Sequence record: NC_019410.1
Direction: 5' to 3' (one strand)
DNA: 64,000 nt
Of this stretch, positions 3,001 to 49,608 are shown one piece after another. The notes under the pieces are model-generated. The model had not been told where the DNA came from. It was given only the letters and a program-made list of their open reading frames with translations, and did not search any database. Numbering within the stretch: the stretch's first letter is position 1; each line of letters begins with the position of its first letter. The position numbers and the translations under genes were made by a program.

Positions 3001-3783
3001 AAGCCCCTGGTCGTCGACCAGACCGGCGGACCGGGTTTCCAGGCGGCGGGCGCGGCGCTCCAGGGCCTGAACATCACTCCGCCGGGCGGCGGCGGCTTCC
3101 TGTCGGGCCTGGGCTCGATGTTCCAAGGGGGCCTGGGCTCGATGCTGCAAGGCGCTCTGAGCTTCGCCGGCCCGCTGCTGGGCGGCCTGCTGACGGGGGG
3201 CAAGAAGAGCCCCAAGACGCCGGCGAGCTATCGCATGCCGGGCGGCGTCATCGGTCAGGCGAGCACCAACAGCGTCTCGGGTCGCGTGATCGGTCCCAAG
3301 CAGAACCTGATCGGCTCTCTAGCGAACCTGGGCTTCCAGTTGTTCGCGGGCGGCATGGGTGGCGGCGGCGGCCTGATGAGCATGTTCGGCATGGGCGGCG
3401 CTGGCGGCGCGGGAAGCTTCATCGGCTTCAAGGAAGGCGGCCTGACGGGCGCGCCAGTCAACCGTTACACCGTCTCCTCGCTGGGCTCGATGTTCGCCAA
3501 CGCTCCGCACTATGCCGAGGGCACCAGCAACACCAAGCTGGCCAACGGCGGCATGCCGGCGATCGTCCACCCGGACGAGGCGGTGATCCCGCTGTCGCGT
3601 GGCCGCAACGTCCCGGTGGAACTGAAGGGCGCCGGCGGCGGAAGCTCGACCACCGTGGTCTCGCCGATCACCGTCTACGCCAACGACGTCGATAGCTTCC
3701 GCCCGGCCCAGGCGCAGATCGCCCGCAAGCAGAACCGCACCCTGCGCCGCGCGGCCCTGCGCAACGCCTCGATGGTCAACTAG
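1..3783 (+). CDS. Tail tape measure protein (5'-truncated by the window edge) with an internal TIGR02594-like peptidoglycan peptidase domain
   Basis: The frame is open from base 1. The protein is Ala/Gly-rich and helical, contains WCAAFVN...GDIVVL...GHVGF...VLGGNQ, ends in a GTA-type TMP C-terminus (YAEG...AIVHPDEAVIPLSRG) and lies directly upstream of the Dit gene. Confidence 0.9.
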   Translation, partial: YLTGNPTSPTRGAPTFGRRQPYTGTMTFDARPAGRAGGMGGLFAAMGSGAATAATGAFTGLRKALNVLPGVALGAAVALAIFGNSITKLNDKAVSYNNIAAGALGTAGDEIGNGMTGLINGIRGLFGAQQKAQGTGDWLVDLSATLIVFGKAIFTLATTLGKILGTLMANVIIPWIELGQKVASGDLKGAAGKAGEVLMGQIGKGNRERWAELGKELGKDWGKALDYAGTRQSIVNGALKSAAGDSAAQQGANAAEKMTEAALAQMKAADQQALAAADLKDATANFKKDLEPLNFNDLFKRAAALADGSFARTAAASKPGGMMAPPAVATQQTAAAVKATIASMGDRVYATAGQHLGQTEAKDAASLQAYFKANGVTIDPKKLSWCAAFVNAVLAQNGLSGSGSLAASSFKDYGDEVSRTDARKGDIVVLKPQAAGATGHVGFLDGFDRHGNVRVLGGNQGAAGGGGVNVSTFASNQVVSFRRTGSGGASNFLGGGITEAQGEEGGSRYERRMNAFKALGTITGQASPAADALADYQGNLEKLRDIIVSEEKLLKDVGADGQSFFNKTNLEALVAAQKKWNRSIVEALNPIAKEARTLSEANDVLQLRAKGLSQEADWQERLTELRNSGINVDLMQDEAKWTQYLNELKKQGLEIDVKALQLKPDELRYQQGRAEALQAELDLTKALNDAKLAGIARTGSSYDRTLSGLVAGKGRDGETLDQTRQRLAGSVGSDGRNALEALQEQAGVMEGSRMADVKASMQSQLEIMRESARLNNTQRGIYDDYRNILGELLNKQGASLKELLDSADEETKRLAQSFVRAKADFENPPGFQKWADSLEPLNKRLQDIKANFLDNFSGGITDALLGEKVDWKAMLHDTFKQMLRAQVDEGLKSLTYKLLGQGGDQGAAQTPEAQALVSAADVQLQAGNSLQQAAASLMQAAQTTATAGAGGGLGVMTGGPAMGGLGGLLGGGGGLGALAGVLGGGDGTATNPFSIADTILKPLVVDQTGGPGFQAAGAALQGLNITPPGGGGFLSGLGSMFQGGLGSMLQGALSFAGPLLGGLLTGGKKSPKTPASYRMPGGVIGQASTNSVSGRVIGPKQNLIGSLANLGFQLFAGGMGGGGGLMSMFGMGGAGGAGSFIGFKEGGLTGAPVNRYTVSSLGSMFANAPHYAEGTSNTKLANGGMPAIVHPDEAVIPLSRGRNVPVELKGAGGGSSTTVVSPITVYANDVDSFRPAQAQIARKQNRTLRRAALRNASMVN

Positions 3784-40536: not shown

Positions 40537-40625
40537 TGGAGCTTCGGGAGGGACTCGAACCCTCATAGGTGTTCCCACCAGCAGAGATTTGCAATCCCGC
40601 GCCTAACCTCTCAGTCCACCGAAGC
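40537..40625 (-). tRNA. tRNA-Cys(GCA) with a long (class II-like) variable arm
   Basis: Acceptor GCTTCGG/CCGAAGC, U73, encoded CCA, anticodon loop TT-GCA-AA, variable arm GGTG-GGAA-CACC, T arm GAGGG-TTCGAGT-CCCTC. Confidence 0.85.
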
Positions 40626-40809
40626 ACAAAAGGACCTCGACGCCCGAAGGCCCGAGGTCCGATCCGTAACCAGGGGAGGGCCGTAGCTGTCCCCTGACCC
40701 TGAACGACAGGTGGCGGGCTTGGTCGTCATCCCGTCAGGCTCGCGGCGCCGCTCGCCTGAACCGCCGATATGCCACGAGGGCAGTGATCCGCAGGTCCCC
40801 ACAAATAGC

Positions 40810-40844
40810 AAAAAGGCCACGATCCGCGAGGACCGTGGCCTTTT
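40810..40844 (-). terminator. Rho-independent terminator closing the GOLLD-like RNA
   Basis: AAAAGGCCACG...CGTGGCCTTTTT on the minus strand. Confidence 0.85.
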
Positions 40845-40845
40845 C

Positions 40846-41722
40846 GTTTTCCGATGGGCTGAGACTACACCCATCAGCAATCCCGCTTCGAGGATTATTC
40901 CCCAGGTGCGACCCCAGGTATTCCCTCGACGTCCACCAGACCCCTTGCGGTAGTCCAGTCCGAGATCATCGCCGCCGTTCTTGCGCACCCCGAAGGGATT
41001 GCGGGTCTGGCGTTTGACCCATCATGGCGAACTACTCGACAGTTCCTTCCCCGCTGGGCTTGCGACCCACTCACCGGCGCTAACCGGCTGACGAAGCTCT
41101 TCCTATCGACACCTCGCGGGCTTGCGACCCTTGAGATGACTCCGTTACCCGAAGGCCGGAGCATTTGGCGACTTACGTCCGCCACTGGACCAGTCTTTGC
41201 GTTTTTCATCGAAGCGGGGATTGAACCCGCGACCGACAGCTTAAGAGGCTGTTGCACTACCACTGTGCTATTCGCAAACCCACCAAGACGTGCTGGTCCA
41301 GTTGTTCCCAGAGCTTTTGACCCCGGAAATGCAACACGCCTCATATCTTTCGCCTTGCGGGCTACTCGACTGCTCTTCAGGACTCCGTCTCCCCCAACCT
41401 TTCGGCCAGGATGCCCAGCACCCCTCGAACTGAAGCAAAGCTCTTCACCGCGAAGTGTCGAACCCTGCAACCCAAACGGTTATCCGTACTCCCTAGACAC
41501 GCTTGCACGGGATAGTCCGCTTGCGACGGACTGGCGGTTAAAGCCTCGGAGTTACCCCGGCCCCGCCTTGTCTCCCACGGTCTTCAGGTCTATCCCCTTT
41601 TGCAAGAGGCGGCCAGCTTCCCAGCCCGGACCCGTCGGCTTCCTCTGTCCTCTTGCGAGGTCGGGCGGCCTATGGGAGACCGTCCCTGTCACCCCGTCGC
41701 CGGGGCTTTCGTCAGAAGCGAC
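40846..41722 (-). ncRNA. GOLLD-like giant ornate RNA (~870 nt)
   Basis: Size, tRNA association, an embedded tRNA, GAGUA E-loop motifs, repeated GCAA tetraloops, and 3' motifs GAGCUUCGUCAGC and GGUGUAGUCUCA recalled from GOLLD; has its own promoter and terminator. Ends are approximate. Confidence 0.78.
41206..41277 (-). tRNA. tRNA-Lys(CTT)-like element embedded in the GOLLD-like RNA; acceptor stem broken, no CCA
   Basis: D arm GCAC-AGTGGTA-GTGC, anticodon arm ACAGC-CT CTT AA-GCTGT, T arm GCGGG-TTCAATC-CCCGC; acceptor TTGCGAA/TTCGATG has only 4 Watson-Crick pairs. Confidence 0.8.
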
Positions 41723-41728
41723 GATGAC

Positions 41729-41757
41729 GTTCTAGCGACAGCCCACGTCGTCGTCAA
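41729..41757 (-). promoter_or_regulatory. Caulobacter sigma73-type promoter TTGACG-N15-GCTAGAAC for the GOLLD-like RNA
   Basis: Matches the recalled Caulobacter housekeeping consensus TTGACGS...GCTANAWC. Confidence 0.75.
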
Positions 41758-41813
41758 CGACTTTTTCCGTCTCGATGTCGAATTTTTTCGACAGTCGTGG
41801 ATGACGACAGTGC

Positions 41814-41841
41814 TTGACATTCTCGTAAGCCCATGCTAGGT
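41814..41841 (+). promoter_or_regulatory. Promoter TTGACA-N15-GCTAGG for the tmRNA
   Basis: Divergent from the GOLLD promoter. Confidence 0.65.
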
Positions 41842-41844
41842 GTC

Positions 41845-42225
41845 GGAAATCGTTGTAATTCGGACAACGGAACTGGCGGCAAGACAGGGGTGCGAATCCC
41901 CTCGCCTCCACCATCGACGCCCGGCGCTGGGAGTACGCGACTCCTGGGCAGGGAGTGTTACCCTGGCGGGCTGCGGCCCGAGCCAAAGGTAGCCGGGCGT
42001 CGTTGATGGGGGCGACTAGCTTTCGATTGGCGCTCGGGACTGAAAGACGCAACGGTGGGTGACCTCCACATCGGCTTGCCGGTGATCGGGTCAGGCAACA
42101 GTAAATGTCGCCGACAATGACAACGACGTCGTGGCTTTCGCCTCGGCTCGTGAAGCCATCGCCGCCTAATAAGCGGTAGAGGAGCCCGCCGGGAGCTTGG
42201 CAACAGAATCCCGGCAACCCCCTTT
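41845..42225 (+). ncRNA. ssrA: Circularly permuted (two-piece, alphaproteobacterial-type) tmRNA; tag ADNDNDVVAFASAREAIAA
   Basis: The acceptor piece ends T arm-CGCCTCC-A-CCA at 41913. The coding piece starts GGGGGCG at 42008, giving a G3:U70 Ala identity pair. The tag ORF at 42110-42169 ends in AA followed by TAATAA. Confidence 0.92.
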
Positions 42226-42350
42226 CGCAGGCGGGAACACCAACAGGCGATCTGTCGGGCGACCGATTTCCGATCCGTGTTCCCGTCTTCGAAAGGTGGT
42301 CAGGCCTACCCTCTTGGTGTGCTATCCAAGGGTCTGGCCACTTTACAGAA

Positions 42351-42429
42351 CGCGGGGTAGAGGAGTCCGGTTGTCCTCGTCTGGCTCATAACCAGGAGAT
42401 CGTGGGTTCAAATCCCACTCCCGCTCCCA
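42351..42429 (+). tRNA. tRNA-fMet(CAT)-like
   Basis: CGCGGGG 5' end with a C1:U72 mismatch, CTCATAA loop, TTCAAAT T loop and encoded CCA. Confidence 0.88.
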
Positions 42430-42795: not shown

Positions 42796-42880
42796 GGTAC
42801 GGTGGCTCGACAGGTAAGGCATCGGCCTCATAAGCCGAGGGTTCGTCCCAATCCTGGTTCAAATCCAGGTCGTACCTCCA
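42796..42880 (+). tRNA. tRNA with CAT anticodon, long variable arm and U73 (Met/Ile2 identity uncertain)
   Basis: Acceptor GGTACGG/TCGTACC, anticodon arm TCGGC-CTCATAA-GCCGA, variable arm GGG-TTCGT-CCC, encoded CCA. Confidence 0.85.
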
Positions 42881-47979: not shown

Positions 47980-49608
47980 TTAGGCGCCGTGCGCCGCGAC
48001 ATAGGCCTTGGCGTAGGCCTCGCGGTAGGCGGCCTCGTGGACCACGCCCGCTTCGTCGGTGAGGTCCTCGAACGCCTCGTAGTGGACGCCATTGGAGGCG
48101 TCCAGGTCGAAAACGCCGTCGAGCCGGGCCTGCTGGGCGTCGGCGCGGCCGTCGATGTCGCCCACGAGCTTGGCCCAGGCCGCGTATTGCGCCTCGACCA
48201 CCGCGTCGAAGGCGGCGATGTAGGCGTTGCTCATCGCCGCCTCGCTGTCGAGCGGCGATTCGGTGACGTCGTTGTAGCGCTCGCCCTCGAAGCCGTCGAG
48301 GATATCGACGATCGCGTCGGCCAACGCGTCTTCGTCGGTTTCGGCCATCGCCTCGGCGATCGCCTTATGGGCGTCTTGCTCGCCCCAGGTCCGAGCGATG
48401 CTCTCGCCCAGGACCGCGTCCTCGGTCGGGAAGCCGTTCTCGTCGAGCACCGGATCGGTGCTTTCGGCCGTTTCTTCGTCCTCGGCTTCGGGGCCGGGGT
48501 CGGTTTGCTCGGCGTCAGCCTTGCCGGCGGCGAAGGCCTCGCCATAGCCGCGCACATAGCCCTCCGAGTAGGCTTGCCGGGCCGAATCGGGGCCGTCGCT
48601 GAGTTCGCCCGGCATGTCGAAAGACGCGTCATACTCCCAGCCGTTCTCGGCGTCGGCGGCCCCGGCCTTGCGACCAGCTTCTTCGCCGGCCTTGTCCCAG
48701 TTGGTCTCGACGTCGTCGAACGACACCGACACCTCGGCGGTGGTCGCGGCTTCCGGCGCCGAGGCCGTCACGGTCACGCCGTCGGCGGCCGTGGCGTCGG
48801 TGGCGTCTTCCGGGTCCTCGACCGGCGCGGCGGCCTTCTCCTCGGCGAAGCGCCGCTCGACGGCGGCCGAGAAGTAGTTCTTGGCGTCGGCCTCGGGGAT
48901 TTCGGCCAGCACTTCCATCTTGCAGCAGCGCAGCTTGGCTTGGTTGTAGTCGGTCGGGATCGCCGTCACGTCGCTCGGATTGATCTCGACGATGATGATC
49001 TTGCCGACGCCGTTGTGGAACTGGAGCAGGTAGTCGAACGAGCAGGCGTGCAGGCCACGCGAGCAGAGCGAATTGCGGTTGGGGTCGCACTTGTCGCGGT
49101 CCATCTCGACCGTCGAGCCGATCTTGTATTCGACCGTGCCCGAGTGGTGGTCGAAGAAGTCGGCGCGCACGCGCTTGAAGGCGTGGAAGTTGCCGTCCGG
49201 GGTCAGGGGCAGGCGACCCTTCTCCAGGAAGGCGTAGAGGTCAGCCGCGATCGACTTGTCGGGGTTGAGGTGAACCTTCTCGATGAACTTGGTCAGCGGC
49301 TCGATGTCGAAGCCTTCCGACAGCACGCGCTTGAAGGTGCCGGCCGCCACGTAATCGATCACGTGGCCGTCCAGGCGCAGACGGTCGCGGTCATCGAGGA
49401 TGACGCGCCCGAACGACTGGGCCGCGACATAGGCGGCGACGTCGGCGATCAGGCGGATTTCGTCGATGTCCTGCGGCACCTTGCGCAGGGCTTCCTCCAG
49501 CTTCTTGGCCTGGGCCGAGGCGCGGGGGAACACGCGGTAGCGACCATCGAGCGTGATCGAGATCACGTCGTTGGTGATCGTCGACGCGATCTTCTTGGGG
49601 GTGGTCAT
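47980..49608 (-). CDS. rIIB: rIIB-like protein with an acidic C-terminal extension
   Basis: LPLTPDG.F.AFK.V..DF.D.HSG, CSRGLHACS..YL and DY...K.R.C motifs. Confidence 0.88.
   Translation of the reverse strand: MTTPKKIASTITNDVISITLDGRYRVFPRASAQAKKLEEALRKVPQDIDEIRLIADVAAYVAAQSFGRVILDDRDRLRLDGHVIDYVAAGTFKRVLSEGFDIEPLTKFIEKVHLNPDKSIAADLYAFLEKGRLPLTPDGNFHAFKRVRADFFDHHSGTVEYKIGSTVEMDRDKCDPNRNSLCSRGLHACSFDYLLQFHNGVGKIIIVEINPSDVTAIPTDYNQAKLRCCKMEVLAEIPEADAKNYFSAAVERRFAEEKAAAPVEDPEDATDATAADGVTVTASAPEAATTAEVSVSFDDVETNWDKAGEEAGRKAGAADAENGWEYDASFDMPGELSDGPDSARQAYSEGYVRGYGEAFAAGKADAEQTDPGPEAEDEETAESTDPVLDENGFPTEDAVLGESIARTWGEQDAHKAIAEAMAETDEDALADAIVDILDGFEGERYNDVTESPLDSEAAMSNAYIAAFDAVVEAQYAAWAKLVGDIDGRADAQQARLDGVFDLDASNGVHYEAFEDLTDEAGVVHEAAYREAYAKAYVAAHGA

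Follow-up and report, generated by a model that had tools for sequence, protein, structure and literature searches.

The 64 kb stretch of record NC_019410 analysed here (the window; window position = record position − 62,000) very probably contains a true and well-bounded GOLLD RNA gene, an ordinary member of its family, on the minus strand of the genome of Caulobacter virus Karma. GOLLD is among the largest and most elaborate non-coding RNAs of bacteria and phages; it was reportedly described by Weinberg and colleagues in 2009, and it forms RNA-only cages. Over 40700-41900, the window has 100% identity with Caulobacter virus Karma (NC_019410/JX100811) as well as with phage Ccr5, and 95-99.7% identity with 16 other phiCbK-like phage records. 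The identity of the RNA follows from a full-length covariance-model match above the curated Rfam threshold: in a Rfam scan of the whole window, GOLLD (RF02032) matched 41342..40856 on the minus strand with 171.2 bits (E 2.5e-46; gathering score 150), over model positions 1-416 and without truncation. The model aligns on both sides of a tRNA-like insert (41278..41205), beginning at the pre-linker hairpin (model 1-61), crossing the variable linker columns, into which the tRNA is inserted, and continuing over the full 3' core to the terminal GGUGUAGUCUCAGCC; the terminal GUAGUCUCAGCC motif of GOLLD is found in the Karma match. An earlier note on this DNA had proposed a GOLLD-like giant RNA in an alphaproteobacterial phage and had suggested a search with the Rfam GOLLD model, expecting hits on either side of the tRNA; the RNA, the host and the layout have all turned out as it proposed. 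ROOL gave no match in the window at the Rfam gathering thresholds.

The finer points of that note fared unevenly. The promoter, terminator, hairpins, motifs and internal tRNA all lie where it had placed them, on the minus strand, and the internal tRNA is recovered at 41278..41205 both by ARAGORN and by the Rfam tRNA model. Promoter and terminator do bracket the unit, but the length of about 870 nucleotides (nt) assigned to it is too short, as the distance from the predicted start near 41722 to the terminator end is ~915 nt. Two 3' motifs had been put forward as matching the GOLLD 3' domain: GGUGUAGUCUCA (40871-40860) is a true signature of the family, whereas GAGCUUCGUCAGC (41099-41087) is not, since it is located in a weakly conserved, partly inserted stretch of the model. 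The two identical GGGUCGCAAGCCC hairpins are present at 41130-41118 and 41068-41056, and GUCGAGUAG also occurs twice, at 41370-41362 and 41040-41032 (all minus strand). An E-loop-like motif is recognizable in the conserved GAGUA-hairpin-GAAAG that closes the 5' domain and that, judged by eye, is shaped like a loop E or bulged-G motif. The pseudoknot forms with nine of its ten pairs (41186-41177 with 41032-41023), both strands differing from the family consensus.

Where the note misled was in the novelty that it implied, as the GOLLD alignment that accompanies Kretsch et al. (2025, Nature) already has the identical coordinates. Supplementary File 3 of that work, in which GenBank phage genomes were searched by cmsearch with the Rfam model, has the entry "NC_019410.1:c103342-102856 Caulobacter phage CcrKarma", corresponding exactly to window 41342..40856; in addition, it has phiCbK, Magneto, Swift, Ccr2, Ccr5, Ccr10, Ccr29, Ccr32, Ccr34, Mesorhizobium phage Cp1R7A-A1, Roseobacter phage DSS3P8 and Brevundimonas phage Bajun, and CcrRogue is absent from it (Kretsch et al. 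2025). The identification is therefore correct but already known, and the embedded tRNAs and the setting in a phage tRNA island are known GOLLD traits. Our literature search found no text discussion of GOLLD in Caulobacter phages. What is added here are the promoter and the boundaries of the 5' domain, the covariation that supports a 5' domain of the Karma type, the decay of the acceptor end and the block swap of the anticodon loop in the embedded tRNA, and the presence or absence of the RNA among Caulobacterales phages.

GOLLD consists of a 3' region that is universally conserved and a 5' region that is less so, residues 421-833 and 1-420 of env-38, respectively (Kretsch et al. 2025, PMC12286853). 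The Rfam model covers the 3' region only, and in Karma 380 nt (41722..41343) separate the predicted start from the Rfam match. Using a 5' profile derived from the sequences of Karma, phiCbK, BL57, Cp1R7A-A1, Sinorhizobium phage Phosso and DSS3P8, nhmmer recovered a homologue of the ~370 nt upstream of the Rfam match, end to end, at ~17 independent GOLLD loci, and the complete loci with a 5' domain that were checked all exceed the GOLLD gathering score. In a 16-sequence alignment, four helices of this segment, comprising 20 base pairs, are 91.9% paired, compared with 36-48% when their 3' partners are slid by 1-3 columns; their covariation score is 0.734, against at most 0.19 for the slid partners, and none of 500 shuffles reaches 0.734. 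Compensatory changes are also visible between Karma and BL57, where C41565/G41535 becomes U/A and U41526/G41520 becomes G/C. From these alignments, we consider the 380-nt segment to be a conserved, covarying GOLLD 5' domain. RNAalifold, run on the MAFFT alignment, returned 17 pairs only, a low count explained by the misalignment of the variable regions. By eye, the Karma 5' domain is like the env-38 or Streptococcus structures at the level of motifs only, namely AGGAUAA followed by a hairpin, and a GUUC...GAGC helix.

Upstream of this domain, a TTGACG hexamer and a -10-like element, separated by a 15-nt spacer, form the candidate promoter, whose GCTANAWC consensus we take to be that of the Caulobacter sigma-73 type. 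In the 64 kb of the window, the exact pattern TTGACG-N15-GCTANAWC occurs once, and with up to one mismatch it occurs twice, against 0.05 matches expected; the sole other match, with one mismatch, lies at 48271-48299 (-). TTGACG is unchanged in all eight phiCbK-like phages compared. BL57 differs at 8 of the 15 spacer bases, its only change in the -10-like element falls on the degenerate N (41732 G>C), and the bases just downstream (41728-41726) diverge; identity between Karma and BL57 picks up again at ~41725, which fits a transcript start near there. At the other end, the terminator stem (17 pairs, 9 of them G-C) carries a 4-nt loop and is followed by a T run, and it is kept in all the relatives compared. 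The close-relative comparison consisted of an alignment of the eight phiCbK-like phages, in which Karma versus BL57 gives the most informative figures (Table 1). By this measure, the GOLLD unit is under tight purifying selection among phiCbK-like phages.

Table 1. Features of the Karma GOLLD locus (window positions) and differences between Karma and BL57
Feature	Position	Strand	Basis or remark	Karma versus BL57
Intergenic DNA upstream of promoter	above 41757			~40% diverged
Promoter	41757-41729	-		both elements kept; -10-like change only at degenerate position
-35-like promoter element TTGACG	41752..41757	-	part of the sole exact TTGACG-N15-GCTANAWC match in the window	
-10-like promoter element GCTAGAAC	41729..41736	-	Caulobacter housekeeping-sigma type, GCTANAWC	
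GOLLD 5' domain, outside Rfam model	41343..41722	-	homology and covariation; predicted start near 41722	~34 differences (~9%)
Pre-linker hairpin, opens conserved 3' region	41284..41342	-	Rfam model 1-61	3 differences (41325, 41312, 41307), pairing kept by all
tRNA-like domain in GOLLD linker	41205..41278	-	ARAGORN tRNA-Lys CUU; Rfam tRNA 56.1 bits	
Anticodon-loop replacement patch	41242..41246	-	five adjacent variable positions among relatives	
GOLLD conserved 3' domain core	40856..41204	-	Rfam model ~140-416	0 differences in 349 nt
Pseudoknot 5' strand AGUGGCGGAC	41177..41186	-	RF02032 [[[[ columns	
Pseudoknot 3' strand GUUCGCCAUG	41023..41032	-	RF02032 ]]]] columns; conserved GAGUA just before	
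Intrinsic terminator closing GOLLD unit	40809..40846	-	17-pair stem and T run	

Karma belongs to a G+C-rich subgroup of GOLLD that comprises ~27 loci by sequence profiles, mostly from Alphaproteobacteria phages and uncultured viral contigs, and in which the linker nearly always contains a tRNA-like cloverleaf, placed at a constant position. In Karma, the match of this cloverleaf to the Rfam tRNA model is local and spans model positions 4-67 only. The elbow is intact (G18 G19; T-loop UUCAAUC), and pairing across 16 relatives amounts to 94% in the D stem, 89% in the anticodon stem and 97.5% in the T stem, with many compensatory changes. The acceptor stem, however, has adjacent mismatches at 2-71 (U/U) and 3-70 (G/A) and is followed by AAAAAC, with no encoded CCA, unlike the neighbouring tRNA-Cys, tRNA-Met and tRNA-Met, all of which have paired acceptor stems (one Met being unpaired only at 1-72) and encode CCA. 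Of 15 linker tRNAs in the subgroup, 5 form all 7 bp of the acceptor stem, four of these with an encoded CCA, and the other ten have 4-6 of the 7 pairs and no CCA. The called anticodon identity changes with nearly every lineage (Lys, Gly, Leu without the long arm, His, Gln, Cys, Arg, Ile, Thr), and the anticodon loop measures 8 nt in relatives L035, L051 and L086 and 6 nt in L050; L050 and L086 show their odd loop size despite a perfect acceptor stem and an encoded CCA. In DSS3P8 and Bajun, ARAGORN calls no linker tRNA.

Among the phiCbK-like phages, the anticodon loop reads CUCUUAA in Karma, Magneto, RBC57 and Swift, CGUCCUA in phiCbK, Ccr10 and Ccr32, and CAUCCUA in BL57. A block of five bases (41246-41242, minus strand) is thus replaced between phages that are ~99% identical, within a region that is otherwise nearly invariant, and this explains why one and the same gene goes by the name of tRNA-Lys in one set of phage records and of tRNA-Gly in another. 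The phiCbK-type and BL57 loops have G33 or A33 together with U37, and are therefore devoid of both U33 and purine-37. Swift combines a loop of the Karma type with other variants that it has in common with the phiCbK group, a mixture that hints at recombination. As far as these comparisons reach, the element of the Karma clade is most likely a tRNA-like structural domain, rather than an ordinary decoder.

An alternative reading would make the unit chiefly a tRNA gene, from which a tRNA-Lys(CUU) is excised by RNase P and 3' processing, the GOLLD halves being a two-piece RNA or a processing or storage scaffold that times the release of the tRNA. The canonical loop, the intact elbow and the 56.1-bit score in Karma are what this reading would predict, as are the five relatives with a perfect acceptor stem, four of them encoding CCA; in the published structures, the linker connects the 5' and 3' domains, which form two distinct bodies, and an 'inhibited storage' idea has already been published. 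Nevertheless, we consider it unlikely, given that the acceptor end, with its two adjacent mismatches and no CCA, departs from those of the three bona fide tRNAs beside it, and that the 99%-identical versions in phiCbK and BL57, with G33 or A33 and U37, violate near-universal rules of tRNA. Equally hard to accommodate are the 'Leu-CAG' version of the Mesorhizobium phage, which has no long extra arm, the 6- or 8-nt loops of several relatives, the two phages in which no linker tRNA is called, and the pseudo-tRNA of a mycobacterial GOLLD, which was not detectably expressed on its own.

The locus might also be a decaying, non-functional GOLLD relic carried along in the tRNA island. Such a relic would account for CcrRogue having no GOLLD at the same site, for the Bajun copy falling under the gathering score with 104 bits, and for the decayed acceptor end of the embedded tRNA; but decay is hardly compatible with an invariant 3' domain, with compensatory changes in the 5' domain while the flanking DNA is ~40% diverged, with the retention of promoter hexamers and terminator, or with a full-model match above the gathering score, and we judge it very improbable. 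A protein-coding function of the region has practically no probability. Long open reading frames do occur on both strands, one of 191 amino acids (40895..41470, -) and one of 199 (41136..41735, +), and in BL57 a hypothetical protein, BL57_146c, is annotated over the start of the 5' domain (locus L005, 1511-1717). Neither of the two frames matches a Pfam family, however, and close relatives carry single-base indels that would shift the frame (BL57 lacks a base at 41512 and has an extra one near 41386, and Swift has an extra one near 41424), on which grounds this reading was rejected; furthermore, substitutions obey base-pairing and not codon rules, and spurious long frames are expected at ~60% G+C. 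By the same indels and lack of a Pfam match, the BL57 coding sequence over the 5' domain is very likely spurious, and BL57_146c probably an annotation artefact.

With the locus taken as a GOLLD gene, a model for its RNA can be proposed by analogy with the GOLLD structures. The host RNA polymerase would transcribe an RNA of ~0.9 kb, the 5' and 3' domains of which would fold independently, and 10 to 14 copies of the RNA would self-assemble, by way of kissing loops and A-minor contacts, to give a closed homo-oligomeric cage. In known GOLLD cages, self-pairing kissing loops hold the two half-shells together (Kretsch et al. 2025, PMC12286853; PMC12990946), and the disordered linker of env-38 (497-538) is inside the cage (Kretsch et al. 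2025, PMC12286853). The 5' domains of the Karma RNA would likewise be the caps and the 3' domains the ring, the linker with its tRNA-like domain would face the lumen, and the cage would hold 10 to 14 tRNA-like domains inside. The RNA would most likely be a phage accessory RNA of the surrounding translation-related cluster (transfer-messenger RNA (tmRNA), two tRNA-Met and tRNA-Cys), probably acting during infection on tRNA- or ribosome-related processes, and the tRNA-like domain would be retained as a structural or cargo element instead of being released as an ordinary decoder. A 2026 review proposes that an embedded tRNA could be stored in the cage and its maturation prevented (PMC12990946). 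In this GOLLD subgroup, the cloverleaf inside the cage could even be the working part and no passenger, a decoy or bait, or a stored substrate, for instance against anticodon nucleases or modification enzymes. We regard this as a quite unlikely proposal, although the exchange of the loop as a block and the drift to many anticodons and to 6- and 8-nt loops fit a contest with host factors that read the anticodon loop, and fit ordinary decoding less well.

Several observations weigh against the account given so far. The folding energy of the 5' domain is not significant (z-score -0.62); this is usual for G+C-rich RNA, in which the minimum free energy is uninformative either way, and therefore the evidence for structure rests on covariation. 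When the Karma-type 5' and 3' profiles were compared with env-38 by nhmmer, neither domain gave a match, and because the 3' domain of env-38, certainly homologous, was missed as well, this profile test has no power to tell whether the 5' folds are equivalent. In Karma, the anticodon loop has the canonical form (C32 U33 CUU A37 A38), and the prospect of a functional tRNA from it leaves room for doubt on the structural-domain reading. In CcrRogue (Poindextervirus), the order tRNA-Met, tRNA-Met, tmRNA, tRNA-Cys is kept and GOLLD is absent between tmRNA and tRNA-Cys (locus L179, 2783-3568); given its absence from this syntenic site, the RNA is dispensable for this phage lifestyle. Finally, cage assembly has been shown only for the environmental GOLLD env-38 (14-mer) and for the S. 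agalactiae GOLLD (10- and 12-mers) (PMC12286853; PMC12990946).

At the level of the family (RF02032), we find no difference between the Karma element and GOLLD: it shares the full-length match, the conserved 3' region, the pseudoknot, a less conserved 5' domain, a total length of more than 800 nt, a phage location beside tRNA genes and a variable linker that holds a tRNA, its 5' domain measuring 380 nt compared with 420 nt in env-38. Mycobacterial GOLLD also lies within a tRNA cluster and has a tRNA-like gene in the linker (J13/15), an embedded copy that was judged to be a pseudo-tRNA, no separate RNA being detected (Behra et al. 2019, PMC6582537); as far as it is reported in a later review, GOLLD with an embedded tRNA-Phe or pseudo-tRNA has been described in mycobacterial tRNA arrays (Morgado et al. 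2020, via PMC12990946). Those arrays are chromosomal and belong to another host lineage, whereas Karma is a lytic phage genome; here the element can be traced from one near-identical phage to the next, with block replacement of its anticodon loop. ROOL is likewise a large ornate RNA of phages and prophages, found near tRNA islands and forming RNA-only cages in which a disordered linker points inward (Kretsch et al. 2025, PMC12286853), but its sequence and secondary structure are unrelated to GOLLD. With viral tRNA-like structures and mascRNA-type signals, the Karma domain has in common the mimicry of a cloverleaf or elbow within a longer RNA and a non-standard acceptor end; it differs from them in being located in the middle of a structured RNA and not at a 3' end.

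Relatives above the gathering score are phiCbK, BL57, Cp1R7A-A1, Phosso and DSS3P8, and 13 further GOLLD loci above this score lie inside tRNA arrays. In Bajun, which belongs to the Dolichocephalovirinae, as does Karma, the gene order is the same and GOLLD is full-length but scores below the threshold (locus L180, 1985-2403). Over 300-340 nt, the Karma GOLLD is ~70-72% identical to those of the Mesorhizobium and Sinorhizobium phages and is much closer to them than to the same-site Bajun copy, a relationship that suggests exchange of the GOLLD cassette among phages. A wider spread of GOLLD, for which 167 matches of the pattern GTGTWGYATT-N25-45-CAGCACGTC had been considered, was rejected: most of these matches are random, as hundreds are expected in 596 Gb, and Rfam GOLLD was found in none of 18 genome loci. 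Only ~27 loci of the pattern scan are real, all of them Karma-like. On one uncultured viral contig, GOLLD shares a large tRNA array with a manA RNA (RF01745, 59.3 bits; locus L052, 5770-5941).

The locus is no new kind of element, and its value is a modest one, namely that it offers a tractable phage-host pair (a lytic phage, phiCbK or Karma, with Caulobacter crescentus, a non-pathogenic model species) in which the function of GOLLD can be approached. The assets of this system are a defined promoter and terminator, natural alleles of the loop, the GOLLD-less CcrRogue and an existing RNA-seq time course of phiCbK infection (McLaughlin et al. 2023, PMC10688885), whose reads were mapped to JX100813.1. 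Between tRNA-Cys and tRNA-Met, the Karma record annotates only "tRNA-Lys" and two terminators, and no non-coding RNA; the GenBank annotation of these phages (tRNA-Lys or tRNA-Gly only, and the very likely spurious coding sequence in BL57) should be corrected.

From high to low coordinates, the neighbourhood comprises tRNA-Met, tRNA-Met, tmRNA (+, 41821-42260), GOLLD, a 175-nt segment and tRNA-Cys, the last three on the minus strand. The tmRNA is of the two-piece (permuted) type, with the tag VADNDNDVVAFASAREAIAA, and is divergent from GOLLD; it is preceded by a promoter-like TTGACA-N15-GCTAGGTG at 41814-41842. GOLLD also adjoins tmRNA in DSS3P8 (locus L004: GOLLD 2530-2963, tmRNA 3124-3545) and in Bajun (L180). 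Long extra arms, unusual for their identities, are borne by tRNA-Cys (40537-40625, -, 89 nt) and by one tRNA-Met (42796-42880, +, 85 nt), and the other tRNA-Met (42351-42429) is unpaired at position 1-72, as in initiator tRNA.

The segment of ~175 nt (40632-40808, -) is bounded by the GOLLD terminator on one side and, on the other, by a second terminator that directly precedes tRNA-Cys. The segment matched no Rfam family and folds with a z-score of -1.35. Its identity is 98.9-100% in every Shapirovirus phage, BL57 with its diverging flanks included, and it may be a small RNA or a leader element of tRNA-Cys. Its 3' part (query 120-174) is also found just upstream of tRNA-Cys in CcrRogue, and a 28-nt core of it is present in Bajun.

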